This document shows positions 1 through 61,794 of a DNA stretch of 64,000 bases, piece after piece. The notes under the pieces are model-generated. The model saw only the letters and a program-made list of their open reading frames with translations, searched no databases and was not told the origin of the DNA. Source of the stretch: Leucoraja erinacea (Eukaryota); NCBI RefSeq assembly GCF_028641065.1, contig NC_073402.1, positions 28,768,001-28,832,000 of the forward strand, given 5' to 3'. The position numbers and the translations under genes were made by a program. Position 1 is the stretch's first letter. Each line of letters starts with the position of its first letter.

Positions 1-201
1 CTAATGCAGTTGTGCAGGCTAATGCAGTTGTGCAGGCTAATGCAGTTGTGCAGGCTAATGCAGTTGTGCAGGCTAATGCAGTTGAGCAGGCTAATGCAGT
101 TGTGCAGCCTAATGCAGTTGTGCAGCCTAATGCAGTTGTGCAGCCTAATGCAGTTGAGCAGCCTAATGCAGTTGAACAGCCTAATGCAGTTGAGCAGCCT
201 A
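1..201 (+). repeat. Coding 18-bp minisatellite (CTAATGCAGTTGWGCAGS)n encoding ANAVVQ/PNAVVQ/PNAVEQ hexapeptides in RLF
   Basis: About 11 tandem 18-mers read directly from the sequence, in frame with RLF and running off the window's left edge. Confidence 0.95.
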
Positions 202-15616: not shown

Positions 15617-15826
15617 CACAAAAAAATGCTGGAGAAACTCAGCGGGTGCAGCAGCATCTATGGAGCGAAGGAAACAGGCAACGTTTCGGGCTGGAACCCT
15701 TCAGGAAGGAAATAGGTAACGTTTCGGGCCGAAACCCGGAAGGGTTTCGTCCCGAAACGTTGCCTATTTCCTTCGCTCCATAGATGCTGCTGCACCCGCT
15801 GAGTTTTATCCAGCATTTTTGTCTAC
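15617..15826. mobile_element. Head-to-head (palindromic) Penelope-type terminal repeat unit; similar units at 19418-19595, 24550-24760, 26163-26358, 30286-30436, 37750-37995, 41490-41700, 56568-56815
   Basis: AATGCTGGAGAAACTCAGCGGGTGCAGCAGCATCTATGGAGCGAAGGAAA... is followed by its reverse complement. Confidence 0.7.
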
Positions 15827-17150: not shown

Positions 17151-20019
17151 AAACTAATCAATAACCCTTCATCAATTATATTTATTGATTAAAGGTAATT
17201 GATCTGAACAGCAGAGTCCAAAGAGAGGTTTCCTTCAGGTGCTCCAGATTCCTCCCACACTCCAAAGACGTACAGATTTGTAGATTAATTGGCTTTGGTA
17301 AACATTGTAAATTGTCCCTAAAGTGTGTGGGATAATTTTAGTGTACGGGGATTGATGGTCGGTGGGCCGAAGGGCCTGTTTCTGCGTTGTATCTCTAAAG
17401 TCTAAAGTATAAAGGCTGGATGATAGAGATTCAGTGTCAGAAATACAAACTATGAGATGTAAAGAACTCACCGATATATTTGAAGGGCTTGGCCAACTTG
17501 GTAAGTTGGTTCAGACACTGCTCCACCACTGAGGATGTCCACTGGTTCACCTTATTGTGTTGATAGGCATTTCCTCCTATGGTGTTTTCCACTGCCTGTA
17601 ATATTAACCCAGGAGACGTCAACAGAATGAAAAATGATCAGCAGGTCAAGGAAAACCTGGCTCAGAAATGGAGTCAAAGCACTCAGAGGGTGGTGGGTGT
17701 ATGGAACGAGCTACCACTCGATTAGTACAGGTGTCAGGGATTATGGGGAGAAGGCAGGAGACTGGGGTTGAGAGGAAAAGATAGATCAACCATGATTGAA
17801 TGGCAGAGTGGGCTTGATGGGCCGAATGGCCTAATTCTGCACCTATCATTTGTGAAGGAGGGAGTCGAGGCAAAATGTAGAAACAAAAAACTGCAGATGC
17901 CGGTCAATACAGGAAAAGACACAAAGTGCTGGAGTAACTCAGCAGGTCAGGCAGCATCTCTGGAGTTTTGGGTCAGGATCCTTCAGACATATTGTGGGTG
18001 TGGGGGGTTAATACTAGAGAGGAGGGGCGGGATATGTGACATTTCACGTTGAGACCTTTCTTCAGACGGTACGAAAGATTCAAGATTCAAGAGAGTTTAT
18101 TGTCATGTGTCCCTGATAGGACAATGAAATTCTTGCTTTGCTTCAGCACAACAGAACATAGTAGGCATGAATACAGAACAGATCAGTGTGTCCATTATAT
18201 AAATATATATACACATGGATAAATAAAACAGATAAAGTGCAAATAAACAGATAATGGGCTATTAATGTTCAGAGTTTTGTTTGAGTTGAGTTTAATAGCC
18301 TGATGGCTGTGGGGAAGTAGCTATTCCTGAACCTGGACGTTGCAGTCTTCAGGCTCCTGTACCTGAAGGTAGCAGGGAGATGAGTGTGTGGCCAGGATGG
18401 TGTGGGTCTTTAATGATGCTGCCAGTCTTATTGAGGCAGCGACTGCGATAGATCCCCTCGATGGTGGGGAGGTCAGAGCGACATTGAACAGACATTTGGA
18501 CAGGTGCGTGCAGAGGTTTAGGGGGTATATGGGCCAAATGTGGGCGGGTGGGACTGGTGTAGATGGGACATGTTGGTCAACATGGGCTGAAGGGCCTGTT
18601 TCCGTGCTGCACGACTCCATCATTCAGCGGCACTCACTTCTTTAATGATGGTGCTGATGTCATCAACGACAAAGGCAACCTGCGGGAAGATAGGAATGAA
18701 CTTGGTCACCATGATGCATGTTTAACATGTCTGGAGTTCATGCTACCCCGTTGTCTCATGCAGTGTGAACTGCTAAGCACACACATACATATACACACTA
18801 ATACACACTAATGCACTAATACACACTACCACACACACACACACACTACTACACACACAGGTATATCTCACCACCTCAACACCTGTACACATAATCCTGC
18901 ATCCACTTTCTTCCCCTCCCTCACTCCTCCATCCTATCCCCTCCACCCCCACTCTCTGCCCCCTTTTACAAACTGCTCCCCCCCCCCCACCACCCAAGGA
19001 TAAGGGGGAAATACTTTGAAACTTCCTCTCCTGGTTCCCACCCACCCCCATCCCAACCTCTCCCAGGAACTCTCTGGCACGGAGGGAAGGGCCGAATGGC
19101 CTACTCCCGCTACCTATTGACTACGTTGGATGGTGGCGTAGCTAAGGTAGAGTTGCTCCCTGACAGGGAAAGGCAGCGCCGGGGACCCCGGGTTCGATCC
19201 CCGTCTACCGGTGCTGCCCGTGTGGAGTTTGCACGTTCTCCCCGTGACCTGCGTGGGTTTTTTCTCCGAGATCTTCGGTTTCCTCCCACACACTCCAAAG
19301 ACGTACAGGTTTGTAGGTTTTATTGGCTTGATAAAAATGTAAACATGTCGTCCCGTGCTGAGTGATGGTCGACCTAGATAGAGTACTACATCCAGATCCA
19401 GGTCCAGATATCTGGGTTTAAGAAACAACTGCAGATGCTGGCAAATCCAAGGTAGACAAAAGTGCTGGAGAAACTCAGCGGGTGCAGCAGCATCTATGGA
19501 GCGAAGGAAATAGGCAACGTTTTACAAAAACGTTGCCTATTTCCTTCGCTCCATAGATGCTGCTGCACCCGCTGAGTTTCTCCAGCACTTTTGTCCACAC
19601 TGTTTCCCAGCCCTTGCCCCAGAAAGTCGTGCCTTTGGCAGGCAATCGCTCCACCCCGACCATGCCCCGCTCTGTACCGGGGCCAGGGGTTTAGACAATA
19701 ACCAGAGCAACTTGCAACCAAAGACCCACTCTCTCATCGCCCATGCACAAGCGTCGCTTTTGAAGCTGGAGCGAGTTTCTCAAACGTACAAAAGAAATAG
19801 TTTAATCGCAGTTTGCCAGTTACCTCCTCCGCCTGCTGAAACTCATCCATGGCCGCTCCTTGCAGTCCCGCCGTTACCACAACAAAGGCAATCACTAAGG
19901 AGCCACAGCGGGCCGGGCCGGGCCAGGCCGGGCCAAGACAGGCATTGGTGGACACATCCCTCCCTGCAAAGCAAACCGGCCCGCCTCACTCATCCTCGTC
20001 CCGGGACGGTTACCTGTTG

Positions 20020-22264: not shown

Positions 22265-25200
22265 GGGAGCTTGCCCGGGACCTCGCGGGTTTACTCCGGG
22301 GAGCACCGGTTTCCTTCCAGAGAGAGGTGTGTAGGGAGAGAGAACGAATGTATAGAGATGAGGAGTGTAGCGAGGAGAGTGGAGAGGAAGGAGTATATTG
22401 AGAGAAGGAGTAAATGCAAGGGCTATACAGAGAGAAGGATAGTAAGTATATAGACATGTAAGTTTGTGTGCTTGGGGAACTCAGGGGTAGATGTATAACA
22501 ATTTGCGTCGTAGGAGGGGTCCCAGGGAGAGCGCGCAAACTCCACACAGGCAGTACCCGAGGTCGGGATCGAACCCAGTCTGGCGCTGTGAGGAATTGAT
22601 AGCTTCCTTCTGTTCCTGGCAATAAATAAGACATTTACAAAACATAAGACAAACACAAAATGCTGGAGTAACTCAGCGGGACAGGCAGCATATCTGGAGA
22701 GAAGGAATGGGTGGTGTTTCGGGTCGAGACCCTTCTTCAGACTTAAAACTTCAAGGGACAGTGACGAAGTAATTCAGTGCGTCAGACAGCATATCTGGAG
22801 GACATGTTCTCCATAGATGCTGCCTGACCCGCTGAGTCACTCCAGCACTTAGTGTCTATCTTCGGTGTAAACCAGCATCTGCAGTTCCTTCCTGCACAGA
22901 TACAAACCCTTCAGACCCACACAGAACAGCGGCCTTCGATGACGGCAGATCTCAGCGGCACAATTGATGATCACAGCCTGCGCTTGCCCCCACCCCCCCA
23001 ACCCCCACACTATCCCAGTCCCACCTTCCCCACCTCACCGTTTCCCCGGCCAGTATAGACTCCCGCTTGGCAGGGGTCTTCCCACCGAGGGGCAGAATGA
23101 GGTGGGGGTCGCCTCATGCATCAACACGAGCCGCTGGAATGCAGGCAGGGACTCGACCAGTTTCCCCCAGAGTTAACCCCTTAAACACAGACACACAATG
23201 CTGGAGTAACTCAGAGTGCCAGGCAGCATCTCTGGAGAGAAGGAATGGGTGATGTTTCGGGTCGAGACCCTCCTTCAGACTGAGTCAGGGAGTGGGGCAT
23301 CCTGCACAAAATGTCGCTCCGTTTATCCTATATCAATACATTGAGAACGGCATGATTGTATTAATGTCAGCTCTTCTTTGACTGGATAGCATGAAAACAA
23401 AAGCTTTTCACCTTGGCACAACGTGATAAACCCAACTACAGTGGTGCAGCGGTAGAGCCAGTGTCCCAGGTTCGATCCTCACTGCCGGTGCTGTCTGCAC
23501 GGAGTTTTTGCTCGTTCTCCCCATGACCGCGTGGGTTTTCTCCGGGTGCTCCGGTTTCCACCCAAACTCCAAACACGTACAGGGTTTGTAGGTTAATTGG
23601 CTTCGGTAAAATTGTAGATGGTCCCTCGTGCGTGTATGAGTGCGCGGGGGGTCGCTGGTCGGCACGGACTCGGTGGGCCGAAGGTCCTGTAACTGCACCG
23701 TGTCTAAACTAAACTAAAAACGACGACACAATGCGATACGATAGAACTTTATGTATCCCAGGAGGGAAGTTGTTCTGGCAACAGTCATGAAACACAAGGC
23801 ACATAGAAACATGAAATTAAAGTCCAGGATTGAGGATGTGCAAAGATTGGGGGGGGGGGGGGGGGTGGGGGGGGGGGGAGAGGGGGAGGGAGGAGGGGGG
23901 GAAAGAAGGGGGGGAAGAGGGAGAAGAGGGAGAGGAAGGGGGGGTGAGAGAGAGGGAGGGAGGCGGTAGGGAGAGGGGGGGAAAGAAGGGGGGGGGGGGG
24001 GATGGTCGGCACGGACTCGGAAGGAGGGTATTTACGTTGTCTCTGTACTGTACACTGACAATGACAATTAAAATTGAATCTGAATCTGAATCTGAATGAG
24101 GGGGGAAGAGGGTAGGGGAGGGGGGCAGGTAGGGGAGGGGGGGGGGAGATGACGGGGGGGGGCAGGGAAGGGCCGAAGTCTACTCCCACCTAATTTCAGA
24201 AGGGTTTCTAGTTGCACAGTTGATGGTGATGCTGTTAACATGGTTCAAGTCAAGTCAAGCCAAGTCAATGGCTTTTATTTCTATAGCACATTTAAAAAAC
24301 AACACTCGTTGGCCAAAGTGCTTTACATTAGTTGAAGGGCTTGTTTGTGGGCTGGGCAGGTTTATACACCTGAGCCCTGCAGTCTGAGTGACTTCCTGGC
24401 CTTGGGGGTTGTGTGGGTGGGGGAGCGGCAAGGGAAACAAAGAGCCTCCTTAATCTCATGCAGCTCCGATGTCACTGGTTATCTTTCTCAACTGATTCAG
24501 CTTCACTGAGCCGGGCAGGCGGTTGTCAGCAAAGATCCCATAGCTATAGTTGTTTGAGAAGGAACTGCAGATGCTGGAAAATCGAAGGTAGACAAAAAGT
24601 GCTGGAGAAACTCAGCGGGAGCAGCAGCATCTATGGAGCGAAGGAAATAGGCAACGTTTCGGGACGAAACCCTTCAGGGTTTCGGCCCGAAACGTTACCT
24701 ATTTCCTTCCTGAAGGGCTTTGGCCCGAAACGTTACCTATTTCCTTCACTCCATAGCTGAAACCCTTCTCCAGACTGAGAATCAGGGGAGAGGGCGATGA
24801 GATATCGAAAGAGGAAACAAAGGAATGGTAGGATATTGGGTATGAATTCCTCATTCAGTAATTCAGATCCAGGGAAGGGCTTGGCAATAGCCAATAGGTG
24901 CAGGAGTAGGCCATTCGGCCCTTCGAGCCAGCACCGCCATTCAATGTGATCATGGCTGATCATCCCCAATCAGTACCCTGTTCCTGCCTTCTCCCCATAT
25001 CCCCTGCCTCAACTATCGTTAAGAGCCCTATCTAGCTCTCTCTTGAAAGCATCCAGAGAACCCGCCTCCACCGCCCTCTGAGGCAGAGAATTCCACAGAC
25101 TCACCACTCTCTGTGAGGAAAAGTGTTTCCTCGACTACGTTCTAAATGGCTTGCCCCATATTCTTAAACTGTGTGGCCCCTGGTTCTGGACTCCCCCAAC

Positions 25201-26447: not shown

Positions 26448-28097
26448 AAAAAGCCGGAGTAACTCCGCGGGGACAGGCAGCCCACCTCTGGAGAGAAGGA
26501 AGGGGTGACGTTTCAGGTTGAGACCCTTCGAGCAGATGCGAAAAAATCGAAGGTAGACAAGAAATCTGGAGAAACTCAACGGGTTAAGCAGCGTCTATGG
26601 AGCGAAGGAAATAGGCGGATGGTCTTGGCCCGAAACGTTGCCTCTTTCCTTCGCTCCATAGATGCTGCTGCACCCGCTGAGTTTCTCCAGCATTTTTGTC
26701 TACAGCCTATTTTGTAATGTTTTCCAATCTATCACAGCCAACACATTACACTTAAGCCAACAATGACCAGCATGACCATTCTACATTTCCTTGTGCATTG
26801 CCCGTTTTGATCTATCGTTTTCACATCTTATCCTTCCATATCTCTACTTTCCTCTCTCCCTGACTCTCAGTCTCAGGAAGGGTCTCAACCCAACCCAACA
26901 CAGAGTCCTTCCGCTCAGCCAACAATGAACGATTTCCTTTGTACATTGTCTGTTTTGATCTGTCCTTTTCACACCTTAACCTTCCATATCTCTAGTCTCC
27001 TTCTCCCAAACCCCCAAGGGGCTTCGGCTTAGAAACGTTGCCTATTTCCTTCGCTCCATAGATGCTGCTGCACCCGCTGAGTTTCTCCAGCACTTTTGTC
27101 TGTATACCTTCGATGTTCCAGCATCTGCAGTTCCTTCTTAAATAGTTTGGTTTAGTTTAAGAAGATAGACACAAAATGCTGGAGTAACGAACTCAGCGGG
27201 TCAAGAAGCATCTCTGGAGATCACGGAGATGTGAAGTTTCGGGTCTAGCCCCTTCTTCAGGTAATAACGAGCCTACAGTCAGTTGGATACCCATTAAGGA
27301 ATCAGACACGTCTCCATAGATGCTGCTGCACCCGCTGAGTTTCTCCAACATTTTTGTCTACCTTCGATTTTCCAGCATCTGCAGTTCCTTCTTAAACATG
27401 GTTCAATTGGCTCTGACCTTCCTTCCATCGAGGGGATTTATCGCAGTCGCTGCCTCAAAAAGGCTGGCAGTATCATCAAAGACACACACCATCCTGGCCA
27501 CACACTCATCTCCCTGCTACCTTCAGGTAGAAGGAACAGGAGCCTGAAGACTGCAACAACCAGGTTCAGGAATAGCTACTTCCCCACAGCCACCAGGCTA
27601 TTAAACCTGGCTCGGTCAAAACTCTGATTATTAATAACCCATTTTCTGTTATTTGCACTTGATCAGTTTATTAATTCATGTGTGTGTATATATTTATATT
27701 ATGGTATATGGACACACTGATCTGTTTTGGAGTAAATGCCTACTATGTTCTGTGTGCTGAAGCAAAGCAAGAATTTCATTGTCCTATACAGGGACACATA
27801 GAAACATAGAAATTAGGTGCAGGAGTAGGCCATTCGGCCCTTCGAACCTGCACCGCCATTCAATATGATCATGGCTGATCATCCAACTCAGTATCCCGTA
27901 CCTGCCTTCTCTCCGTACCCCCTGATCCCCTTAGCCACAAGGGCCACATCTAACTCCCTCTTAAATATAGCCAACGAACTGGCCTCAACTACCCTCTGTG
28001 GCAGAGAGTTCCAGAGATTCACCACTCTCTGTGTGAACATGACAATAAACTCACTTGAACTTGAACCTTCTTGTTTTTTTCTTGTTTTTTTTCTTAG

Positions 28098-30218: not shown

Positions 30219-33200
30219 ATAGACTTGATGGGCCGAATGGCCTAATTCTGCTCCTATCTGGATGGACAAGGGGCAGAGATGAAAGGGTAGACAAAAATGC
30301 TGGAGAAACTCAGCGGGTGCAGCAGCATCTATGGAGCGAAGGAAATAGGCAACGTTTCGGGACGAAACGTTGCCTATTTCCTTCGCTGCATAGATGCTGC
30401 TGCACCCGCTGAGTTTCTCCAGCATTTTTGTCTACCTTCGATTTTCCAGCATCAGCAGTTCCTTCTGAAAGAGGACAACAAGAGGTTTAGGTTCATTTTT
30501 GTCGCGTTTACCGGAGGGTCACAAAAGAGAACAAAGGGGGTGTCAGGGAAGGAGAAGAGTGAAACGTGACACCAGAGGGAGGGATCTCGGTGGAAAAACG
30601 GTCCCAAGGTAACGCGAATGTGATCATCAGGCAGGCCCAGCAGTGCTCTCCTGAGAGCGGACAGCGAATGTAACCTGATGAGATGTGCGGCAGTGTGGCC
30701 ACACACACACACAGCGCGGCGGCTTTTAGCAACATTCACATCAAAGAAATGCTAACCATGCCTTTGAAAATTACTTCCTTGCTTGGAGTTGGGGCGAGCT
30801 GCAATTAAATGAACACACACACACACACTGACACATGCACTGATACACACTGACACACACACACACACTGACCCACATACACACACACGGNNNNNNNNNN
30901 NNNNNNNNNNNNNNNNNNNNNNNNNNNNNNNNNNNNNNNNNNNNNNNNNNNNNNNNNNNNNNNNNNNNNNNNNNNNNNNNNNNNNNNNNNNNNNNNNNNN
31001 NNNNNNNNNNNNNNNNNNNNNNNNNNNNNNNNNNNNNNNNNNNNNNNNNNNNNNNNNNNNNNNNNNNNNNNNNNNNNNNNNNNNNNNNNNNNNNNNNNNN
31101 NNNNNNNNNNNNNNNNNNNNNNNNNNNNNNNNNNNNNNNNNNNNNNNNNNNNNNNNNNNNNNNCATACNNNNNNNNNNNNNNNNNNNNNNNNNNNNNNNN
31201 NNNNNNNNNNNNNNNNNNNNNNNNNNNNNNNNNNNNNNNNNNNNNNNNNNNNNNNNNNNNNNNNNNNNNNNNNNNNNNNNNNNNNNNNNNNNNNNNNNNN
31301 NNNNNNNNNNNNNNNNNNNNNNNNNNNNNNNNNNNNNGCCGATGGACTTCAGCTGCTGGGGGAAAGGTTGGAGGAGGTGGGGGGAGAGGAGGAAGGGGGG
31401 GTGGGGGGGGGGGGGGGGGGGGGAGGGGGGGGGGGGTGAGGGGCCGTCGGAAGGAGGGCAGGCCAGAGGGTCAGCGTACATCCGTGCTGACTGCTCACAA
31501 ACCACCCCCTCCCTCCTCCCCTCCCCTCCTCCACCTTCTCCCAAGAGTCTGGGGCTTGTTCTTTAAATACCGGACCCTCAGTTGCCTTGGTGACAGCAAT
31601 GACACTGCAATGAAATTCAAGTCAAGCGGGGCTGATGATATCAGCGGGCAGAGCCGGGGCAGATGAACAGGAGACCGCAGCCAAGCGGAACGCGCAGAGA
31701 GAGAGAGAAAGAGTGGGGGTGGGGGGAGAAGGGAAGAGGGAGTGGGGGGAGAGAGGGACAGAACGTGAGGGAGAGCGAGGGAGAGGGGAGAGGGGAGGGA
31801 GCGAGATAGCGCGGAGGGAGGGAGAGAGAGAGCGAGATCTAGCCTTTGATCAGCTAGAAGGAATCTCCCATTGATTCCACATTCCTCCCCGTCGCCGGCA
31901 CCGCTTCCCCCTCCCCTCGTCTCGCCGACCTCCCTTTGTACACCGCCTTCAAAGGCAGCACCAAATGCCTGAGCCTTCAGCTGGCTAAAGTCCAGAGGCT
32001 CCGTGCAAATCGCTGCCTGCCACAAAGAGCTGAATGCAAAACCCTCCCTCGGCTGTTGACACTTAAGAGATGAGAGAGAGAGAGAGAGAGCTATCTTTAT
32101 TTTTTTACTCTAGAGAGATACAGCGCGGAAACAGGCCCTTCGGCCCACCGAGTCCGTGCTGGCCAGCGATCCCCGAACACTAACACTATTAACACGATCC
32201 TACACACACACACTAGGGACAATTTACTTTTTTTTTTAACGAAACCAATTAATAACCTAATTGGACGTCTTTGCAGTAAACCGGAGCACCCGGAGAAAAC
32301 CTACAAACTCCGTACAGACAAGCACCCGTGGTCAGGATCGAACCCGGGTCTGCCGCTGCAAACGCTATGAGGCAGCAACTCTACCGCTGCGCCACCGTGG
32401 TCTATAATATACCATATAACTAGTGTGAACGGGTGATAAATGGCCAGCATTGACTCAATGGGCCGAAGGGCCTGTTTCTGAGCAGTATCTTCAAACAATC
32501 ATTCTCCACAATCTTGTACAAGTGAATGTTTAGCCTGAGATAGACACAAAAATCTGGAGTAACTCAGCGGGACAGGCAGCATCTCTGGAGAGAAACATAG
32601 AAAATAGGTGCAGGAGGAGGCCATTCGGCCCTTCGAGCCTGCACCGCCATTTAATATGATCATGGCTGATCATCCAACTCAGTATCCTGTACCTGCCTTC
32701 TCTCCATCCAAGTTAGATGTGGCCCCTTGTGGCTAAAGGGATCAGGGGGTATGGAGAGAAGGCAGGGATGGGATACTGAGTTGGATGATCAGCCATGATC
32801 ATATCGAATGGCGGTGCAGGCTCGAAGGGCCGAATGGCCTCTACTCCTGCACATATTTTCTATGTTTCTATGTGTCCCAGATAGGACAATGAAATTCTTG
32901 CTTTGCTTCAGCACAACAGAATATAGTAGACATTACTACAAAAACAGATCAGTGTGTCCATATACCATTATATAAATATATACACACATGAATAAATAAG
33001 CTGGGTTACACAGAAAAGCTGGAGAAACTCAGCGGGTGCAGCAGCATCTATGGAGCGAAGGAAATAGGCAACGTTTCGGGCCGACACTCTACTGAATAAA
33101 TAAGCTGATAGCGGAAAAGTCAGCGGAAAGACAATACATGATTACAATCGAGACATTCACAGCGTAATGATAGATACACGATAAAGGGAATAATGTTTAG

Positions 33201-41400: not shown

Positions 41401-42954
41401 TGTCAGTCCATCCTTACTTTCGGTCGGGTTAGTTTGCGGAAAGGTCCAGACCCGAAGCGTGGTCTTGTCCATTCCCTCCGCAGATGGTCAAGAAGGAACT
41501 GCAGATGCTGGAGAATCGAAGGTAGACAAGATTGCTGGAGAAACTCAGCGGGTGCGGCAGCATCTATGGAGCGAAGGAAATAGGCAACGTTTCGGGACGA
41601 AACCCTTCCGGGTTTCGGCCCGAAACGTTACCTATTTCCCACCTGCCTATTTCCTTCGCTCCATAGATGCTGCCGCACCCGCTGAGTTTCTCCAGCAATC
41701 TTGTTCACCCTCCGCAGATGCTGCCTGGTGGCCCACTGAGTTCTTCCAGCAGAAGATAGACACAAAAAAAGCTGGAGCAAGTCAGCGGGTCCAGGCAGCA
41801 TCCCTGGAGAAAAGGAATAGGTGACGTTTCGGGTCGAGACCCTTCTGTGCGGGACTGAGAGTCGGGGGAAAGAGTAAGGAGATATATAGACAGTGATGTA
41901 GAGAGATGTTGTACAGATGAATGAAAGACATGCAAAAAAAGTAACAATGAGAAACAAAACAGGTTGTGGCTCCGTCAGGATCACAGATTAGTCTAGCTTA
42001 ATATAATTATTACTGTCTCATGTACCGAGATACAGTGAAAAGTTTCAATTTGTATGTCATCGAGTCAAGGAAAAGACAATTTCTCAAACGACAAAATAGA
42101 CAATAGGTGCAGGAGGAGGCCATTCGGCCCTTCGAGCCAGCACCGCCATTCACTGTGATCATGGCTGATCATCCCCAATCAGTACCCCGTTCCTGCCTTC
42201 TCCCCATATCCCCTGACTCCGCTATTTTTAAGAGCCCTATCTTTAACTCTCTCTTGAAAGCATCCAGAGAACCGGCCTCCACCGCCCTCTGAGGCAGAGA
42301 ATTCCACAGACCCACCACTCTCTGTGAGAAAAAGTGTTTCCTCGTCTCCGTTCTAAATGGCTTGCCCCTTATTCTTAAACTGTGGCCCCTGGTTCTGGAC
42401 TTCCCCCAACATCGGGAACATGTTTCCTGCCTCTAGTGTGTCCAAGCCCTTAACAATCTGCCTCGTAGTTCCAGGGACCAAAGTCCATCCAGATCTTTGG
42501 TGCTGCCTATGTGGCTTACACCATTCCCCCTGTGACAACTTGCGTTATCCCTCGGTGCTTAAGTTTCTTCCCACATTAAGGTTGGTTAGTTTAGTTTAAT
42601 TTATTGTCATGTATACCGAGGTACAGTGAAAAGCTTTTTTTTCTTGTGCGCTATCCAGTCAGCGGAAAGACTATATGTGATTACAGTCAAACCATCCACA
42701 GTGTTCAGAAGATACAGGATAAAGGGAATAACGTTTAGTGCAAGACAAAGTTCGGAAAAGTCCGATTAAAGGTAGCCCGAGGGTCTCCCAAGGAGGTAGA
42801 TGGTAGGTCAGGGCCACTCTCTAGTTGGCGAGAGGATGGTTCAGTTGCCTGATAACAGCTGGAAGGAAACTGACCCTGAATCTGGAGGTAGACAAAGATG
42901 CTGGAGAAAACTCAGCGGGTGAGGCAGCATCTATGGAGTGAAGGAATAGGTGAC

Positions 42955-43093
42955 TTCTTCTTCTTTCGTTTGACGTGCACAGCTTAAAGTTGTAGGCAAC
43001 TTGTTCTATTTGATCTTCTGTTTGTGCACGTCGAGTTGATTGCATTAATCGAAACAGGACGGACCACGTGAAGGTTGCAATCTTCCACCCCCC
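42955..43093 (-). mobile_element. Short ribozyme-headed SINE-like retroelement with (AAG)n tail and 10-bp TSD
   Basis: Flanked by the direct repeat AATAGGTGAC (42945-42954 and 43095-43104) inside a Penelope-type repeat. Minus strand: GGGG start, ribozyme, GACGTGCACA/TGTGCACGTC stem, tail AAACGAAAGAAGAAGAA. Confidence 0.8.
43038..43091 (-). ncRNA. Minimal HDV-like ribozyme, second copy with catalytic C->U substitution (probably inactive)
   Basis: Minus strand reads GGGGUGG-AA-GAUUGCA-ACC-UUCACGU-GGU-CCGUCCU-GU-UUCGA-UUAA-UGCAAUC, with a G1.U wobble. Position 43048 is U where the other copy has C. Confidence 0.72.
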
Positions 43094-44116
43094 AAATAGG
43101 TGACGTTTCGGGTCAAGACCCTTCCTCAATCTGGAGGTGTGCGTTTTCACAACTTGATGAGGATGTTGCCAGGACTTTAGTTGCCGAGCTGTAAGCGGAG
43201 GATTGGGCAGGTTAGGAGTTAATTCCTTGGAGTGCAGGAAGCTGAGCGGTGATCTTGTAGAGGAGTACAAAATCAGATAGGATCAATGCACAGTCTTGTA
43301 CCCAGGAGAGGGGAATCACGAACCAGAGCTCATCGGTTTAAGATAAGAGGGGAAATATTTAATTGGAACCCGAGATGCCCCTTTGTCTCTCAGATAGTGG
43401 TGGGTGCATGGACCGAGCTTCCAGATAGCAGGTAGTTGAAGTAGGTCCAGAAACAGATGCACAAGACACTTGAGGAAGAAAGGTTTAGAGGGCAATGGGC
43501 CAAATGCAGCTAAATAGGACTAGGTTAGAATGGGGCATCTGGATCGGCATAGACGCGTTGGGCCGAAGGGTCTGTTTCCCCGCTGTATGACTCTATGACA
43601 TGTTGAATCTCTGTAGTCTCCTGAAGAAGTTGAGGTGTTGGTGTTTTGATAGCTCTCTGTGAGCACGGTGGCGCAGCGGTAGAGTTGCTGCCTCACAGCG
43701 CCAGGGACCCGGGTTTGATCCTGACCTCGGCTGCTGTTGGTACAGAGTTTGAACGTTCGCCCTGTGACTGCGTGGGTTTCCTCCGGGTGCTCATGCTTCC
43801 TCCGAAATTCCAAAGAAGTGCGGGTTTGCAGGTTAATTGGCTTCTGTAAATTGTCCCTAGTGTGTAGGGTTAGACTTTAGAGGTACAGCATGGAAACAGG
43901 CCCTTCGGCCCACCGAGTCTGTGCCGAACAGCGATACTCCATACACTAACACCATGCTACACACTAGGGACAATTTTACAAACCTATACGTTTTTGGAGT
44001 GTGGGCCGAAACCAGAGCACCCAGAGAAAACGCACGCGGTCACAGGGAGAATGTTCAAACTCTATTCAGACAGCTCCCGTAGACAGGATCGACCATGGGT
44101 CTCTGGCACTGTAATA

Positions 44117-44323
44117 TACCCCTGTCCCACTTAGGAAACTTGAACGGAAACCTCTGGAGACTTTGCCAAGGTTTCCTTCCGGTTCCCAGAGGTTGCAGGT
44201 GGTTGCCGGAGGTTGCAGGTAGTGGAAGCAGGCAGAGAGACTGACAAAAACCTCTGGGAACCTTGGGTGTGGCACAAAGTCTCCAGAGGTTTCCATTCAG
44301 GTTTCCTAAGTGGGACAGGGGCA
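44117..44323. mobile_element. PIF/Harbinger-type MITE inserted in a SINE
   Basis: About 50-bp TIR CCCCTGTCCCACTTAGGAAAC...GTTTCCTAAGTGGGACAGGGG; TAA at both flanks splits the SINE motif CTGTAAGGCAGC. Confidence 0.8.
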
Positions 44324-44452
44324 TAAGGCAGCAATTCTACCGCTGCGACACAGTGCCGTCATAGAGCTAGTGTACGGGTGGTTGCTGGTTGGCGTGGACT
44401 CGGTGGGCTGAAGGGCCAGTTTCTAAACTAAACAGCGATGTGTTTCTTGCAG

Positions 44453-44770
44453 AAAATGTGGGAGAAATACGCCTGCATTTTGAAAATAGGGTCCTCCTCT
44501 AACAAAAAGTACCAGAAGAACGAGAAGAAGAGGAAAGAGATCAAACGTTTCCGCAGAGGGCTAGCCATCCAGGAGAAGATAATGCGGAAACTCCAGCAGA
44601 TGGAGATGAAGATCCGTGACATGGAGGACATGATCATGAAATTTGCAAAGAAGATGACCCGTCGTGTGACGGGCTCGGAGTGCACCAGCCGATCCTCGAG
44701 TTGTATCTGCTCACGGTGCCACACCCCGAGCGCCTTCAGCACAGAACCGGAATCCCACCATACAGTCTGA
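44453..44770 (+). CDS. TMCO2: TMCO2-like gene copy B, coding exon 2 (coiled coil + Cys motif; spliced protein 202 aa)
   Basis: Acceptor tttcttgcag|AAA in phase 0. Contains the coiled coil GLAIQEKIMRKLQQMEMKIRDMEDMI and CICSRCHTP, similar to recalled human CSCSDCQSP. Ends at TGA; possible variant poly(A) signal AGTAAA at 44889-44894. Confidence 0.82.
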   Translation, partial: KMWEKYACILKIGSSSNKKYQKNEKKRKEIKRFRRGLAIQEKIMRKLQQMEMKIRDMEDMIMKFAKKMTRRVTGSECTSRSSSCICSRCHTPSAFSTEPESHHTV

Positions 44771-45038
44771 AGCAAACTCCGACCCATGGCAGAAACTGTC
44801 AAGAGTGAAACTTTCTTCCTGATCATGTCAAGGCAACAATTGATTGCAACAAATCACTTAAATAATCTTCAACTTGTTGAATTGTCACAGTAAAGAACTT
44901 TTTTATTGAATGCACCAAACCTCATATGTTGTTTGTTCATTATCTCTGCTTATCGGTACTGCTTCTCCTAGTCATAGCGTGGAAACAGGCCCTTTGGCCC
45001 AACTTGCCCACACCGACCAACATGCCCCATCTACACTT

Positions 45039-45159
45039 GTCGTGCACAGCCTAAAGTTGTTGGACAACTTGTTCTATTTGATCTTCCGTTTATGCACGTC
45101 GAGTTGATTGCATTAGTCGAAACAGGGCGGACCACGTGAAGGTTGCAATCTTCCACCCT
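45039..45159 (-). mobile_element. Second copy of the ribozyme-headed SINE-like element, lacking the tail
   Basis: Co-linear with 42970-43091 and inserted in a CR1/SINE 3' tail. Confidence 0.75.
45106..45159 (-). ncRNA. Minimal HDV-like (CPEB3-type) self-cleaving ribozyme, catalytic C intact
   Basis: Minus strand reads AGGGUGG-AA-GAUUGCA-ACC-UUCACGU-GGU-CCGCCCU-GU-UUCGA-CUAA-UGCAAUC. This gives P1 7 bp, P2 7 bp, P3 3 bp, L3 UUCACGU, J1/4 GU and J4/2 CUAA. Confidence 0.8.
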
Positions 45160-47632: not shown

Positions 47633-48059
47633 AAGGGAGAGGCAACTGCTTTTGGAATGACGGGAGAATATCTACATGCATCGTGGAGCTCGATAATCCA
47701 GTCTAGAGACCAATGTGACTGTGAGGCTAATCATCCGGCAGAAAGATTGACTTGTATTTACGTGGCAGCTTTTCCTGGCAACACACGGGACTTTGCAACT
47801 GATATTATTCAAGCATGGTTACCATTGTGATGTAGGAAGTGTAGCAACCACTATGACCACATCACAATGGTAACCATGCTTGGATAATATCAGTTGCAAA
47901 GTCCTGTGTGTTGCCAGGAAAAGCTGCCATGTAAATACAAGCAGATATTTCTGCAGGATGATTGTCCTCACAGTCACATCAGTCTCTAGACTGCATTATC
48001 GAGCTCCATGGTGCATGTGGAGATTCTCCTGTCATTTAGAAAGCAATTGCCTCTCCCTT
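47633..48059. mobile_element. Foldback/palindromic MITE (~200-bp arms, ~22-nt spacer)
   Basis: AAGGGAGAGGCAA...CATGGTTACCATTGTGATGT / ACATCACAATGGTAACCATG...TTGCCTCTCCCTT. Confidence 0.75.
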
Positions 48060-54722: not shown

Positions 54723-56064
54723 CTGGCCCATATAGAAACATAGAAATTAGGTGCAGAAGTAGGCCATTCGGCCCTTCGAGCCTGCACCGCCATTCAATAT
54801 GATCTTGGCTGATCATCCAACTCAGTATCCCGTACCTGCCTTCTCTCCATAACCCTCTGATCCCCTTAGCCACAAGGGCCACATCTAACTCCCTCTTAAA
54901 TATAGCCAATGAACTGGCCTCGACTACCCTCTGTGGCAGAGAGTTCCAGAGATTCACCACTCTCTGTGTGAAAAAAGTTCTTCTCATCTCGGTTTTAAAG
55001 GATTTCCCCCTTATCCTTAAGCTGTGACCCCTTGTCCTGGACTTCCCCAACATGGGGAGCAACCTTTCCTATCTATGTACCGGCCTAAATGGGGTCGAGG
55101 AAAGAGTGTTCACATACGCGGCCCTGTTTTCACTAATCTTCCCACCACCATGCACATGAAGCACAAGACAGACACCATTGTGTGCAGATGCCGAGACATG
55201 CGTCCAGCTCTGGCTGAACATCTTCTAATCTTGTGTGTGTGTGTGTGGACTCGACAAGAAGGAAACCTGCCTAAATGGCATTTGAAACTTGTGATAGTAC
55301 CTGCCTCAACTACCACCTCATTCTATAGATCGCTCCATATACCCGCTGTTTGGGGGGGAAAAAAACTTGCCCCTCGAGTTACTCGTAATTCTTTCCCCTC
55401 TCCCCTTAAGCCTATGCCATCTAGTTCTTGAATCCCCTACTCTGGGGGTGGGGGAAATACTCTGCGTTCCCTCTATCTATTCGCCTCATGATGTCTTGTT
55501 TAAGAAGGAACTGCAGATGATGGAAAATCGAAGGTAGACAAAAGTGCTGGAGAAACTCAGCGGGTGCAGCAGCATCTATGGAGCGAAGGAAATAGGCAAC
55601 GTTTCGGGCCGAAACCCTTTCTCTTTTNNNNNNNNNNNNNNNNNNNNNNNNNNNNNNNNNNNNNNNNNNNNNNNNNNNNNNNNNNNNNNNNNNNNNNNNN
55701 NNNNNNNNNNNNNNNNNNNNNNNNNNNNNNNNNNNNNNNNNNNNNNNNNNNNNNNNNNNNNNNNNNNNNNNNNNNNNNNNNNNNNNNNNNNNNNNNNNNN
55801 NNNNNNNNNNNNNNNNNNNNNNNNNNNNNNNNNTTTATATATACAAGTTCTCTTTTAAACAAACTATATTTACATAGAGGCCGGGCGGTCGATACTCAGT
55901 GTATTTTGACACTGGACTCGTATTTAGGTTATACTTGTTATTAATGTAATCCTGATCCTATGTATCAATATCATTGTTATCTTTATCATTATATTTTTGT
56001 TTTTGAAAAAAACGAATAAAAAGATTTTAAAAGGAAGGTTTTAATTTATTTGCTGTCTTTGCAG

Positions 56065-56151: not shown

Positions 56152-57960
56152 GTGAGTGTTCCTTGGCAGATCCATTTCCTGATGAATCCAGCTGAGGGAA
56201 ATTAAATTCACACACGCATTTTGTGCCTAATTTATGTCGTATGGATTGAATTGGGATTTGAATGATGGATTGGACTATTTTGGTGATAATAACACTTTGG
56301 TCAATTTTACGGTCTAGCTTCAAGACCCTGAATGGAATTGGTAATTAGTTAAACGGGTCTGTATCAAAAACTTGGCACAATCAAGGACGAGTCGCATCCT
56401 GGCCACTCCCTCTTCTCCCCTTTCCCTTGGGACAAAAGGAAGAGAAGTGTGAAAACGCACACCTCCAGATTCTTCCCAACTAAACCATCGACCACAACTA
56501 AAGAGCAGCCTTGAACTGCTATCCAGCTAATTTGGAGACCCTCTGACTATCTTTGATTGGACTCTGTGTTTAAGAAGGAACTGCAGATGCTGGAAAATCG
56601 AAGGTAGACAAAAATGCTGGAGAAACTCGGCGGGTGCAGCTGCATCTATGGAGCGAAGGAAATAGACAACGTTTCGGGCCGAAACCCTTCAGGTGGGAAA
56701 TAGGTAACGTTTCGGGCCGAAACCCAAGGGGTTTCGTCCCGAAACGTTGCCTATTTCCTTCGCTCCATAGATGCTGCCTCACCCGTTGAGTTTCCCCAGC
56801 ATTTTTGTCTACCTTTGGTTAGAATCTATTGGCTTTACCTTGCACTAAATGTTATTCCCTTGTCACGTGAGTGGCTCGATTGTAATCATGTATTGTCTTT
56901 CCGCTGACTGGTTAGCACGCAACAAAAGCTTTTCACTGGACCTCAGTACACGTGACAATAAACTGAACTCAACTTTGTTTCAAGCAGTGTCGCTCACTTT
57001 CCCCCTCTCCTACTCGGCAAGCTTTGAATGCCCAGTTTAATCTCCATTGCGATCTTTTAGCAGTGGCTTTTGAAAGCAGGTGTGTCAAGTACGGAGAATG
57101 TGATGGTAGAATATGGTTGGAACAATGTTATGTTTTAATCCATGGGTTTATGAGGCGATGAGACATCAGCAGGTGCAAAGCCTGAGCCCGGGCTGTCTCT
57201 ATACGGGGCTTTATTCAATAAACCCTCAGTAGTGCTGTCGTTATACAGGTGTTTTCTCTCTCTGTCTGTCTCTCTTTGTGTGTTGTGCATTATGGCAACT
57301 ACTTGAGCGGCTGCATTAATGGGCTGGAACTTACTGGAAAGTAAAGACATCGACAATACATGCATTCAAATTAAATTCAAGGGATTAGGGCACGGTGAGT
57401 TGTGACTCTACAGAACCTACTGACAGACCTAGCCCCTGCTTGTGTTTGCTTTGTACAAGCAGTATCTCAGATTCAGATTCAGATTCAATTTAATTGTCAT
57501 TGTCAGTGTACAGTACAGAGACAACGAAATGCATTTAGCATCTCCCTTGAAGAGCGACATAGCAAACGATTTGAATAAATAATAATAAGTGTCCGGGGGG
57601 GGTGGGGGTGGTGATTGGCAGTCACCGAGGTACGTTGTTGAGTAGAGTGACAACCGCCGGAAAGAAGCTGTTCCTCGACCTGCTGGTTTGGCAACGAGAG
57701 ACCTGTAGCGCCTCCCGGATGGTAGGAGGGTAAACAGTCCATGGTTGGGACTCTGTTTTTGGTCTCCCTTTTATAATTTGTAAGAACCGGCAAGTCAATT
57801 TTAAAAGCATTTTATAAGAACCTCCTGTTAACATGAGTTTGAGTTTAGTTTGTTGTCACGTGCTCTGAGGTACGTTGGGAAAACTTGTGTTGCCTGCTAA
57901 CCAGTCAGTGGAAAGACAATACAGGATTAATTCCCATAACAGAAAGTTGAAGCCGTAAAT

Positions 57961-60155: not shown

Positions 60156-61794
60156 GTCGGTCGCTTCCCGCTAAAGTCTGCTCCGAATGTTGTTAGATTG
60201 TAGTGTGGCACCTATGAACTATGTTGTCAATTGTAACATTTTGGAACGGGCGCCATTTCGGGTTGGAACCTATCTTCGGTCTGAAGGAATTCCTCCTCGT
60301 CTCCATTCTAAAAGGTTCCATTCAGTCTGAAGGGCCCTGACCCGAAACGTCGCCTATTCCTATCCTCCAGGGACACTGCCTGTCCCACTGAGTTACTCTA
60401 GCATTCTGTGTCTTATCTTTAGTGGGAACAGTGCCTTCGGCCCAGTGTGTCCACACCGACCGACATGTCCCATGTGCACTAGTCCCATCTGCCCGTATTT
60501 CGACCGTATCCCCCTAAATCACAGTGAGGAGGATCCACTGTGATGGATGTGTGTGTAAATTGTGTTAAGTGTGTGTCTTGGTTTTTTTTAATATAATGTC
60601 ATGACTGCAGGAATGAAATTTTGTTCAAACCTTGTCTGTTTGAATGACAATAAAAGACATTCTATTCTATTCTAATCCTATTCAAGTGCCTGTCTAAATG
60701 TTTCTAACATGTTGTAATTGTACCTGCCACAACTACCTCCTCCGGCAGCTCATTCCGTACAACCTTGAGTTTTTGAGTTCCCTCGGGTTCCTATTAAACC
60801 TTTCCCCGCTCGCCTTAAATCAATGTCCTCTGGTTCTTGATTCCCCTACTCTGGGCAAAAGACTCTGTGTGTTTACCCGATCTATTCATGATTTTGTACA
60901 CCTCTATAAGATCATCCTTCATCCTCCTGTGCTCCAAGGAATAGAGTCCTAACCTGCCTCAACCTCTCCCTATAGCTCAGAGGTAGACAAAAATGCTAGA
61001 GAAACTCAGCGGGTGAGGCAGCATCTATGGAGCGAAGGAATAGGTGGCGTTTCGGGTCTCGAGACCCATTCCTTCTCTCCACAGATGCCGCCTCACCCGC
61101 GGAGTTTCTCCAGCATTTTGTGTTGCCTCCGATTTTGTCCAGCATCTGCAGCTCTTTCTCACACAATAACTAATGTGCTTTTTGCACAGTGGATGTGCTC
61201 TACTCGTTTCACAGGTGTGTTGTCAAGCAAATTTGACTTTAAGCCATCTAAGCAACTTGTAGAACAGTCGGATATGTCTCGGCAAAGTAGCATTTCCAAG
61301 AGCAATTTAAAGAATGAGAAACCGTGTGTGGGATGGACATAGGGAGGGTTTTCCTGTATTTGGACCCAAGACACTGAAAGCATTCATTCCCAACGAGTTG
61401 TCATTAATACAGCGCCAGAGACCCGGGTGCGATCCTGACCTCGGGTTCTGTCTGTGTGGAGTTTGCACGTCCCTTCCGTGACTGTGTGAGTTTTCCACCC
61501 ACATCTAAAAGGCACGCAGGTTTGTAGGTTAATTGTCCCTCTGTAAATTGTCCTTGCTGCGTAGGGAGTGGATGTGAAAGTTGGATAACATAGCTCTGGT
61601 GAGAACGGGTGGTCAGAGCTCACTCGGTGGGCCGAAGGGCCTGTTTCCAAGCTCTATCTCTGAACTGAACTAATGCTGTTGAAGAGAGGTGTTAATACAT
61701 TCATTTGTGTACAAGCAAATGTTACTGTAGCTGCTGTAGACATTGTGTTTTGCGTCTCGGCTGGGTAGTAACAGGCTGCCTTTAATTTCCGCAG

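Follow-up and report, generated by a model that had tools for sequence, protein, structure and literature searches.

Two short, related stretches on the minus strand of a 64-kb window of Leucoraja erinacea DNA (64,000 nucleotides of NC_073402.1, positions 28,768,001 to 28,832,000; coordinates below are those of the window) raise the question of whether a vertebrate SINE-like retroposon can begin with a minimal self-cleaving ribozyme of the HDV type. The original prediction described them as copies of an element of about 140 bp headed by a 54-nt ribozyme fold, one intact and one catalytically dead. We first asked whether the copies and the fold are as described, and subsequently which known ribozyme class they resemble most and how the element could have spread.

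Two copies of one element

Exact 19-22-mers from three parts of the element occur twice each in the window and 0-0.03 times in shuffled sequences, and the two copies are 94% identical over 118 nt. The observation thus held, with slight corrections to the boundaries. The first nucleotide of P1 (G1) of copy A is at 43091 and not at 43093. Three additional bases lie between the upstream target duplication and G1, and in copy B the host repeat resumes at 45040. The features of both copies, and of a third insertion described below, are as follows.

42955-43094, minus strand: copy A, a 140-bp insertion made of three extra bases, the 54-nt predicted ribozyme fold, a 3' stem-loop and a purine-repeat tail
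43038-43091, minus strand: copy A predicted ribozyme fold, with P1 GGGGUGG:CCGUCCU, P2 GAUUGCA:UGCAAUC, P3 ACC:GGU, L3 UUCACGU, J1/4 GU, linker UUCGA and J4/2 UUAA
43048, minus strand: U at the position of the catalytic C (first base of J4/2) in copy A
43092-43094, minus strand: three bases (TGG) between the upstream target duplication and G1, not part of the 5' end of the family
43095-43104: upstream copy of the target-site duplication (AATAGGTGAC on the plus strand)
42945-42954: downstream copy of the target-site duplication
41793-41845, plus strand: paralogous host repeat with the uninterrupted target (empty site)
42972-43032, minus strand: 3' stem-loop of copy A, with outer arms GACGUGCACA / UGUGCACGUC and inner stem AAGUUG / CAACUU
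42955-42966, minus strand: purine-repeat tail AAAGAAGAAGAA
45041-45159, minus strand: copy B, 119 bp without tail or target duplication, lying inside another repeat that has lost about 20 bp at the site
45106-45159, minus strand: copy B predicted ribozyme fold, with C at the catalytic position (45116) but A at +1 (45159), giving A-U instead of G.U
55091-55268, plus strand: third ribozyme-headed insertion, of a different family and about 178 bp, with the predicted fold at 55091-55142 and a flanking direct repeat GCCTAAATGG at 55083-55092 and 55269-55278 that overlaps G1-G2

The 10-bp duplication flanking copy A is matched by an empty site, where two repeat matches (41793-41825 and 41816-41845) overlap on a single AATAGGTGAC. 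RNA reads and DNA contigs from copies of the host repeat also skip the insertion, with the joint 42944 to 43094 seen in 62 reads and in 5 and 6 contigs. At copy B, position 45038 reads as the host repeat consensus. The 3' stem-loop folds in both copies.

A predicted P4-less fold at the 5' end

All named elements of the nested double pseudoknot, in the order P1-J1/2-P2-P3-L3-P3'-P1'-J1/4-(P4)-J4/2-P2' with P1 of 6-7 bp and P3 of 3 bp in the class, are present in both copies, with P1 7/7, P2 7/7 and P3 3/3 base pairs, L3 UUCACGU, J1/4 GU, a 5-nt linker in place of P4, and J4/2 CUAA in copy B and UUAA in copy A. The two differences in P1 preserve pairing (G.U versus A-U and G.U versus G-C), but both are one-sided transitions and so weak evidence. 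Minimum free energies calculated for nested structures only were no better than those of shuffled sequences (z = -0.85 and -0.16), a calculation that is not informative for a pseudoknot. A generic HDV descriptor gave 0.10 hits per shuffled window, with at least one hit in 10 of 100 shuffles, indicating that the fold by itself is not rare; it is the match to a phage ribozyme class and the position at the 5' end of the insertion that make it more than chance.

The original prediction had assigned the fold to the CPEB3 type and proposed a comparison with Rfam models. At gathering thresholds, Rfam gave nothing in the window, and an E-value search of the whole window listed no ribozyme family at E<=5. 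The CPEB3 model (RF00622) gave no hit at E<=10 on either copy, even in a 66-nt search. The only ribozyme family listed for the copies was RF02682 (HDV-F-prausnitzii), whose alignments are full length and start exactly at 45159 and 43091, but with scores of 16.6 (copy B) and 10.3 bits (copy A) against a gathering score of 44; this model has a 20-nt P4 region that is absent here.

Relationship to phage theta ribozymes

We searched for the core of the element with P1 and P2 left free (P3, L3, P3', U, GU and CUAA), which identified 47 viral contigs and at least 115 metagenome contigs. A perfect 7-bp P1 was present in 22 of 52 viral matches and 77 of 114 metagenome matches, and 46 of these 99 have a tRNA predicted to end within -6 to +2 nt of G1, as do 12 of 15 loci checked by tRNA prediction. 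These are the theta ribozymes of Caudoviricetes phages (Kienbeck et al. 2024, PMC10879173), the P4-less HDV-like class, of which four were shown to cleave with Mg2+ and all four were inactivated by a C-to-U change at the catalytic position. The element carries the modal core of this class. In phage contigs, complete folds were found 14 times with C at this position and 0, 0 and 0 times with U, A or G. A family-specific 22-mer found no metagenome contig. We also looked for eukaryotic retroelements among the 53 of the 99 matches that lacked a predicted tRNA; eight neighboring ORFs were tested and gave phage-like domains (ribonucleotide reductase, 5'-3' exonuclease, AAA/MoxR, VWA, DUF7788) and no reverse transcriptase.

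Positions that our search pattern did not fix also agree with the 37 unique phage examples: G at +1 in 36/37 (A in 1/37), A as the second base after P1 in 32/37, a 5-nt linker in 30/37, a linker starting with UU in 31/37, and A before the C in 35/37. Copy A matches all five and copy B four. In an alignment of 55 ribozymes, including both copies, 541 of 541 cells pair, and 166 cells are changed on both sides compared to 40.2 in shuffles, with none of 500 shuffles reaching this value; when partners were slid, only 36-58% paired.

A first model built from phage examples (R1) aligned to the element end to end, with 37.8 bits for copy A and 42.7 bits for copy B, but is largely circular, since 20 of its positions were fixed by our pattern. 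We thus built a second model (R2) from nine phage ribozymes that do not match the pattern, seven of them adjacent to tRNAs, although this training set was itself picked out by R1. With filters off, R2 found three sites in the window and nothing else above 11.1 bits: copy B (32.9 bits, E=2e-5), copy A (28.8 bits, E=2e-4) and the site at 55091 on the plus strand (34.6 bits, E=9e-6), which was absent from the original prediction. All three sit at the 5' end of insertions. The P1, P2 and P3 letters of the third site differ from those of the first family but still pair; the Rfam CPEB3 model gives it 12.4 bits against a threshold of 35.

Abundance, 5' ends and transcripts

In a DNA sequencing run, summed contig depth was 1.3e5 and 1.4e6 on the bins of the element against about 22 on unique bins; these values point to a very abundant element but are not a copy number. 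Approximately ten times more sequence mapped to copy B than to copy A, which hints that letters of the B type are commoner, but the bins cover different parts of the element and we do not rely on this comparison. Contig joints from 43091 to 43663 (9 and 14 contigs) and from 43091 to 43884 (1 and 12 contigs) show that other genomic copies end exactly at G1, and four of the listed contig pieces on copy B stop at 45158. RNA reads cover the element, but no pile-up of molecule starts was listed at 43091 or 45159, the only one listed being at 44166. This is a weak negative result, since the RNA was poly-A selected and came from a related species.

A candidate ribozyme-headed retroposon

The interpretation of the original prediction is partly supported. 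The target duplication, the empty site and the purine-repeat tail indicate a short non-autonomous retroposon, its 5' end matches a complete P4-less HDV-like fold, and the resemblance to CPEB3 in L3 and J1/4 is real, since both the Rfam CPEB3 consensus and a mouse Cpeb3 primer (PMC10919898) hold TTCACGT at that place. Other claims were not supported or need modification. Copy B, proposed to be intact, has A at +1 and lacks the tail and the duplication; the closest described class is that of the theta, or minimal HDV-like, ribozymes rather than CPEB3; and the fold is not unusually small, since ribozymes of 52-60 nt are a described class (PMC10879173). The proposed Ingi/Vingi or RTE partner is a guess. 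Nothing in the window shares either end of the element: a 24-mer of the 3' end occurs only in copy A, a short-word BLAST search of the element against the window gave only 9-13-nt chance matches, and none of the eight largest ORFs tested has a reverse transcriptase domain.

We consider it probable that the two stretches are decayed copies of a very abundant non-autonomous non-LTR retroposon of roughly 137 nt, whose first 54 nt encode a predicted P4-less HDV-like ribozyme with the same core as phage theta ribozymes. In this view, a source copy would be transcribed, probably as part of a longer host transcript, and the ribozyme would fold and cut just 5' of G1, such that the element RNA starts at its own first base. 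The 3' stem-loop and tail would then be taken by the reverse transcriptase of an unidentified LINE, which would copy the RNA into a nicked target and generate the 10-bp duplication. Of these steps, our data show the duplication, the empty site and the tail, while read-through transcription and the enzyme are inferred, and Mg2+-dependent self-cleavage is inferred from homology to ribozymes that cleave in vitro. After insertion the copies would decay neutrally; copy A, in which the catalytic C is now U, should be dead, and copy B has G1 changed to A and has lost its tail.

An alternative, which we regard as unlikely, is that the 5' fold is kept as a structure and not as a catalyst. It could be a handle for the reverse transcriptase of the partner, a protective 5' fold, or an internal promoter, as is Pr77 of trypanosomatid L1Tc/NARTc, which is reported to be both promoter and ribozyme (PMC3383444); the 5' end at G1 would then come from transcription initiation or template end effects. 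The absence of a listed start pile-up, and the fact that cleavage is so far only inferred, are compatible with this reading. However, the unpaired letters of the catalytic core (L3, J1/4, A-CUAA) are those conserved in ribozymes that cleave in vitro, and complete phage folds were found only with C at the catalytic position; a mere structural handle would not need these letters.

It is less likely still that the element is an ordinary SINE with its own polymerase III promoter, the head being an inherited relic that plays no part in its spread. The element is SINE-sized and very abundant, but ARAGORN finds no tRNA-like gene in or next to it, and no Rfam family other than the HDV one matches the head. 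In addition, a second, unrelated-looking family in the same window carries the same fold at its 5' end with compensated stems, which argues for selection on the fold. Chance resemblance, despite the 0.10 descriptor hits per shuffled window and the sub-threshold Rfam scores, is very unlikely given the R2 E-values, the matches at unfixed positions, the start of the fold at the 5' end of the family and the third independent instance.

Comparison with described systems

The element shares with theta ribozymes the architecture and size (54 nt here), P3 ACC:GGU, L3 UUCACGU, J1/4 GU, a 5-nt linker instead of P4 and P2 abutting P3. Two further features of the class are each present in only one of the two copies, A-CUAA in copy B (UUAA in J4/2 of copy A) and G1.U at the cut site in copy A (A-U in copy B). 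The context differs, since phage ribozymes sit at the 3' end of tRNAs (46 of 99), and the defining position of theta ribozymes in the strict sense, within 5 nt of a tRNA 3' end, is not found here; the only tRNA-like gene in the window is at 19131-19211. Here, the predicted ribozyme is the 5' end of a retroposon in an animal genome, and P1 is G+C-rich. Nearly 99% of such ribozymes were reported in phages, but the eukaryotic set of that study was RefSeq complete genomes plus human and mouse (PMC10879173).

HDV-like ribozymes are also reported at the 5' end of non-LTR retrotransposons and their non-autonomous derivatives (R2 and R2 SIDEs, RTE, L1Tc with NARTc; PMC3383444, PMC4035085, PMC3414825, PMC3185411). 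There, the cut site is the first base of the element, which frees its RNA from a longer transcript, and short derivatives keep the ribozyme. In the present family, the 5' end of other copies likewise coincides with the predicted cut site, although copy A itself has three extra bases. Those ribozymes have a P4 and are longer, for example 77 nt for L1Tc, and their hosts are insects and trypanosomatids; no autonomous partner has been identified here. The mammalian CPEB3 ribozyme shares L3, J1/4 and a G-rich P1 beginning with GGGG, but has a P4 and a different J4/2, and is single-copy and intronic. Hammerhead- and twister-bearing retroposons (retrozymes and Schistosoma elements; PMC4918200, PMC7229834, PMC8501958) also carry small self-cleaving ribozymes within non-autonomous retroelements, but of different classes and, for retrozymes, with a circular-RNA cycle; nothing here suggests circles.

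HDV-like ribozymes that cut out the 5' end of retrotransposons and minimal HDV-like ribozymes are thus both known, but the two had not been put together. Searches of the openly readable literature on HDV-like ribozymes in SINEs, in vertebrate non-autonomous retrotransposons and in sharks, on minimal HDV-like ribozymes in retrotransposons, on ribozymes in skate SINEs and on self-cleavage in Leucoraja revealed no description of an HDV-like ribozyme in a SINE of skates, sharks or any vertebrate; the papers found for sharks and Leucoraja were irrelevant, and none was found for skate SINEs. If the consensus of this family cleaves, the minimal class, reported with a role in tRNA maturation, also serves retrotransposition in a vertebrate; the same 13-nt P3-L3 core is shared by phage, retroposon and, for the L3 loop and J1/4, the mammalian CPEB3 ribozyme; and the thousands of genomic copies give a ready test of which positions the fold tolerates. 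For annotation, a simple model such as R2 picks these elements out cleanly where Rfam thresholds miss them.

A more far-reaching reading, which we consider as likely to be wrong as right, is that ribozymes of the theta type, reported to be almost confined to gut phages where they trim tRNAs, are also the working 5'-end processors of at least two SINE-like families that have reached very high copy number in a vertebrate genome. They would then be by far the most numerous ribozyme genes in a vertebrate, would offer a natural mutation-accumulation data set for the HDV fold, and could be a plausible kind of source for single-copy intronic ribozymes such as CPEB3, this last step being much less likely than the rest.

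Sequence context

A scan for sigma-70 promoters and terminators, irrelevant to a eukaryote, was at chance level. The ORF at 12-3434 on the plus strand resembles ZNF292 and ends 40 kb away from the copies.

The two copies and their insertion sites

Read on the minus strand, the segments 43094-42955 (copy A) and 45159-45041 (copy B) are two copies of one short element, hereafter family A, and share 94% identity over 118 nt. They are the only two copies in the window: exact 19-22-mers taken from three parts of the element each occur twice, whereas 0-0.03 occurrences are expected in shuffled sequence. Copy A is a clean insertion, in which the 10 bases AATAGGTGAC (+ strand) stand at 42945-42954 and again at 43095-43104. 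A paralog of the interrupted host repeat, at 41793-41845, carries the same sequence uninterrupted, with a single AATAGGTGAC. Reads and contigs from other copies of that host repeat also skip the insertion, through a joint 42944->43094 seen in 62 RNA reads and in 5 and 6 DNA contigs. From its 5' end, copy A consists of:

43094-43092 (-), three extra bases, TGG
43091-43038 (-), a 54-nt head
a short spacer
43032-42972 (-), a stem-loop, which folds in both copies
the tail AAAGAAGAAGAA

Copy B lies inside another repeat. Comparison with a copy of that repeat at 43478-43600 and with consensus letters from public runs shows that the host sequence stops at 45160 and resumes at 45040, with about 20 host bases missing. 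Copy B has neither a tail nor a duplication.

Predicted fold of the head

In both copies, the head reads as follows:

P1, (G/A)GGGUGG pairing with CCG(U/C)CCU
J1/2, AA
P2, GAUUGCA pairing with UGCAAUC
P3, ACC pairing with GGU
L3, UUCACGU
J1/4, GU
a 5-nt linker, UUCGA, where P4 would be
J4/2, CUAA in copy B (C at 45116) and UUAA in copy A (U at 43048)

The observation made in the original prediction holds, and all of its structural statements are correct, with three corrections. G1 of copy A is 43091 and not 43093; copy B starts with A, so that its first P1 pair is A-U rather than the G.U wobble; and the two P1 differences between the copies are one-sided transitions, which keep pairing almost automatically and say little.

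On its own, the fold is not much more than could be expected by chance. A generic descriptor requiring P1 of 7 bp, P3 of 3 bp, P2 of at least 7 bp, any L3, and C-N-R-A at J4/2 hits only copy B in the window, but it also hits 0.10 times per dinucleotide-shuffled window, and 10 of 100 shuffles had a hit. Rfam finds nothing at its thresholds. When hits were listed by E-value, the only ribozyme family recovered was RF02682 (HDV-F-prausnitzii), which aligns over its full length and starts exactly at 45159 and 43091, but scores 16.6 and 10.3 bits against a threshold of 44. The CPEB3 model does not appear at E<=10, even when only 66 nt are searched.

Comparison with phage theta ribozymes

We took the core of the element, left P1 and P2 free (P3 + L3 + P3', six free bases, U, GU, a gap, CUAA), and scanned public contigs. 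The pattern matched 47 viral contigs and at least 115 metagenome contigs. A perfect 7-bp P1 at the right distance is present in 22 of 52 viral matches and in 77 of 114 metagenome matches, and 46 of these 99 have a tRNA predicted to end within -6 to +2 nt of the first P1 base. When loci were analyzed with a dedicated tRNA predictor, 12 of 15 had a tRNA or tmRNA ending within 1-2 nt of it; in one phage contig (L020, 5516-6018, + strand), a theta-type ribozyme starts at the base after a predicted tmRNA (5516-5961) rather than after a tRNA. The matches without a good P1 are conserved coding stretches of related phages. The core pattern also matches a tandemly repeated stretch in related phage contigs (L001, L016, L024 and L027, with two matches 117 nt apart in each) whose P1 pairs only 5/7, and which looks like a conserved coding repeat and not like ribozymes. 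A P4-bearing ribozyme with the same core occurs twice, 1950 nt apart (1611 and 3561, + strand), on a 3.6-kb, 25% G+C metagenome contig (L094), each time followed by an A-run, and also on three other contigs (L051, L097 and L137); this may be a repeated element of unknown host.

The core with a perfect P1 next to a predicted tRNA end is the signature of the theta ribozymes (Kienbeck et al. 2024, PMC10879173), which are P4-less HDV-like ribozymes of Caudoviricetes gut phages. Four of them were shown to cleave with Mg2+, including a 56-nt ribozyme, and all four were inactivated by C-to-U at the first J4/2 position. Nearly 99% of such ribozymes were reported in phages, in a study whose eukaryote set was RefSeq complete genomes plus human and mouse.

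We extracted 37 unique P4-less examples of 55-60 nt, which have 30 different P1 and 34 different P2 sequences. They are conserved at positions that our pattern did not fix, and the element agrees with them: G at +1 (36/37), A as the second base after P1 (32/37), a 5-nt linker (30/37), a linker beginning with UU (31/37), and A before the catalytic C (35/37). Copy A matches all five and copy B four. On a 55-row model-guided alignment that includes both copies, 541 of 541 cells pair, although the alignment is fitted to the model, which favours pairing. In this alignment 166 cells are changed on both sides, as compared to 40.2 in shuffles (0 of 500 shuffles reach this value), and when partners are slid by 1-3 columns only 36-58% pair. 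As a control in the manner of the published study, we searched viral contigs with the same pattern and a 4-8-nt linker. This gave 34 sites with C, 14 of which are unique complete folds, while the 16, 9 and 14 sites obtained with U, A and G, respectively, included no complete fold.

Model searches of the window

A first model (R1), built from 22 phage ribozymes that match our pattern, scores the two copies at 42.7 and 37.8 bits, with the next hit in the window at 11.7 bits. Twenty of its positions were fixed by a pattern taken from the element, and this result is thus largely circular. R1 also found 16 further ribozymes in the same phage loci that do not match the pattern; they have other L3 or P3 variants or a 6-bp P1, score 33-46 bits, and 13 of the 16 are tRNA-adjacent. 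The scores of the element fall in their range. Single phage tRNA arrays carry three or four different theta-type ribozymes, as seen on contigs L053 (2721, 3114, 4666, 4905), L007 (4112, 2833, 1844), L012 (1995, 2944, 8346) and L032 (1580, 578, 4939); their P3 covaries (ACC:GGU against GCC:GGC) and their L3 varies.

We then built a second model (R2) from nine of the 16 further ribozymes that do not match the pattern, seven of which are tRNA-adjacent. With filters off, R2 finds three sites in the 64-kb window and nothing else above 11.1 bits:

55091-55144 (+), 34.6 bits, E=9e-6
45159-45105 (-), 32.9 bits, E=2e-5
43091-43037 (-), 28.8 bits, E=2e-4

The E-values come from a shortened calibration and are rough, and since the training set of R2 was itself picked out by R1, some bias toward this core remains.

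A third insertion with a predicted ribozyme head

The site at 55091 (+) was not part of the original prediction. It heads an insertion of about 178 bp, of a different family, flanked by the direct repeat GCCTAAATGG (55083-55092 and 55269-55278), the last two bases of which coincide with G1-G2. The rest of the element is unrelated to family A, holds a (GT)n run and ends in GACAAGAAGGAAACCU. Its head keeps J1/4 GU, a 5-nt linker (UUUCA), CUAA and an L3 beginning with UUCAC. Its stems are different and still pair: P3 is GUG:CGC against ACC:GGU, P2 is GGA(A)AGA:UCUUCC, with one bulged base, against GAUUGCA:UGCAAUC, and P1 position 6 is C-G against G-C. From this one copy two registers are possible (P1 of 6 or 7 bp, L3 of 8 or 6 nt).

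The best Rfam hit on this site is the CPEB3 ribozyme, at 12.4 bits against a threshold of 35, and the corresponding consensus shows that CPEB3 shares L3 UUCACGU and J1/4 GU. A mouse Cpeb3 primer (PMC10919898) holds TTCACGT 18 nt from the cut site. The comparison with CPEB3 made in the original prediction is therefore correct for the loop, but the family-A copies are not CPEB3 family members by Rfam's test, and the initial interpretation was partly supported.

Family-level evidence from public sequencing runs

In the DNA contigs of a run that holds 0.61 of the sampled words and may be the source sample (X1), the element bins have summed depths of 1.3e5 and 1.4e6, as compared to about 22 on the unique stretch 44480-44899. 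Depths in a run from a second organism (X5) are of the same order (1.5e5 and 1.6e6). Although summed depth is not a copy number, these values show a very abundant repeat in at least two organisms. The highest summed depths in the stretch analyzed, about 6-8 million in the DNA contigs against about 22 on unique sequence, are found at 43640-43723 and 43808-43975, the first of which looks like the head of a tRNA-derived SINE.

Joints 43091->43663 (9 and 14 contigs) and 43091->43884 (1 and 12 contigs) show other copies abutting other repeats exactly at G1, and at least four contig pieces on copy B stop at 45158, one base short of its A. Both observations fit a family whose first base is the G of the cut site. 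Poly-A RNA reads of a related organism (X22) cover the element at depths of 16-19 and 84-166, against 0 on the unique stretch, and no pile-up of starts at 43091 or 45159 was listed in this run.

Interpretation

The data show an insertion with a target duplication and an empty site, a purine-repeat tail, a high copy level, a family 5' end at G1, a fold that matches, position for position, a class that cleaves in vitro, and compensated stems in a second family. In contrast, transcription within longer host transcripts, self-cleavage 5' of G1, and recognition of the 3' stem-loop and tail by a LINE reverse transcriptase are inferred. The three extra bases of copy A are most simply explained as non-templated additions at the 5' junction; such additions are a feature of LINE-type integration. 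Copy A should be catalytically dead. Copy B keeps the C but has A-U at the cut site, a variant seen in 1 of the 37 natural phage examples (L023, tRNA-adjacent), and it may or may not cleave.

Ribozyme-terminated non-LTR elements with non-autonomous derivatives, on the one hand, and minimal P4-less HDV-like ribozymes, on the other, have both been described. Their combination in a vertebrate retroposon was not found in our literature searches, which did not extend to Repbase, Dfam, subscription journals or the supplements of the theta ribozyme study.

Other features of the window

The only tRNA-like gene predicted by ARAGORN in the window is a tRNA-Val (GAC) of 81 nt at 19131-19211 (+), which could be a gene or a SINE head. 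An open frame of 1140 codons runs in from the start of the window (12-3434, + strand); it has weak C2H2 zinc-finger hits and an E=7.6e-9 match to a solved fragment of zinc finger protein 292, and is probably the large last exon of a ZNF292-like gene. Long, near-perfect palindromic hairpins at 19469-19582, 26569-26686, 30303-30419, 47786-47906 and 61000-61108 score on both strands for several unrelated miRNA models, below threshold (for example mir-559, at 70.4 bits against 95), and look like MITE-type repeats rather than miRNA genes. Three copies of a 58-nt hairpin, at 15710-15769, 24645-24704 and 56698-56756, score 46 bits on both strands for mir-722, whose threshold is 81, and represent a repeated hairpin element.
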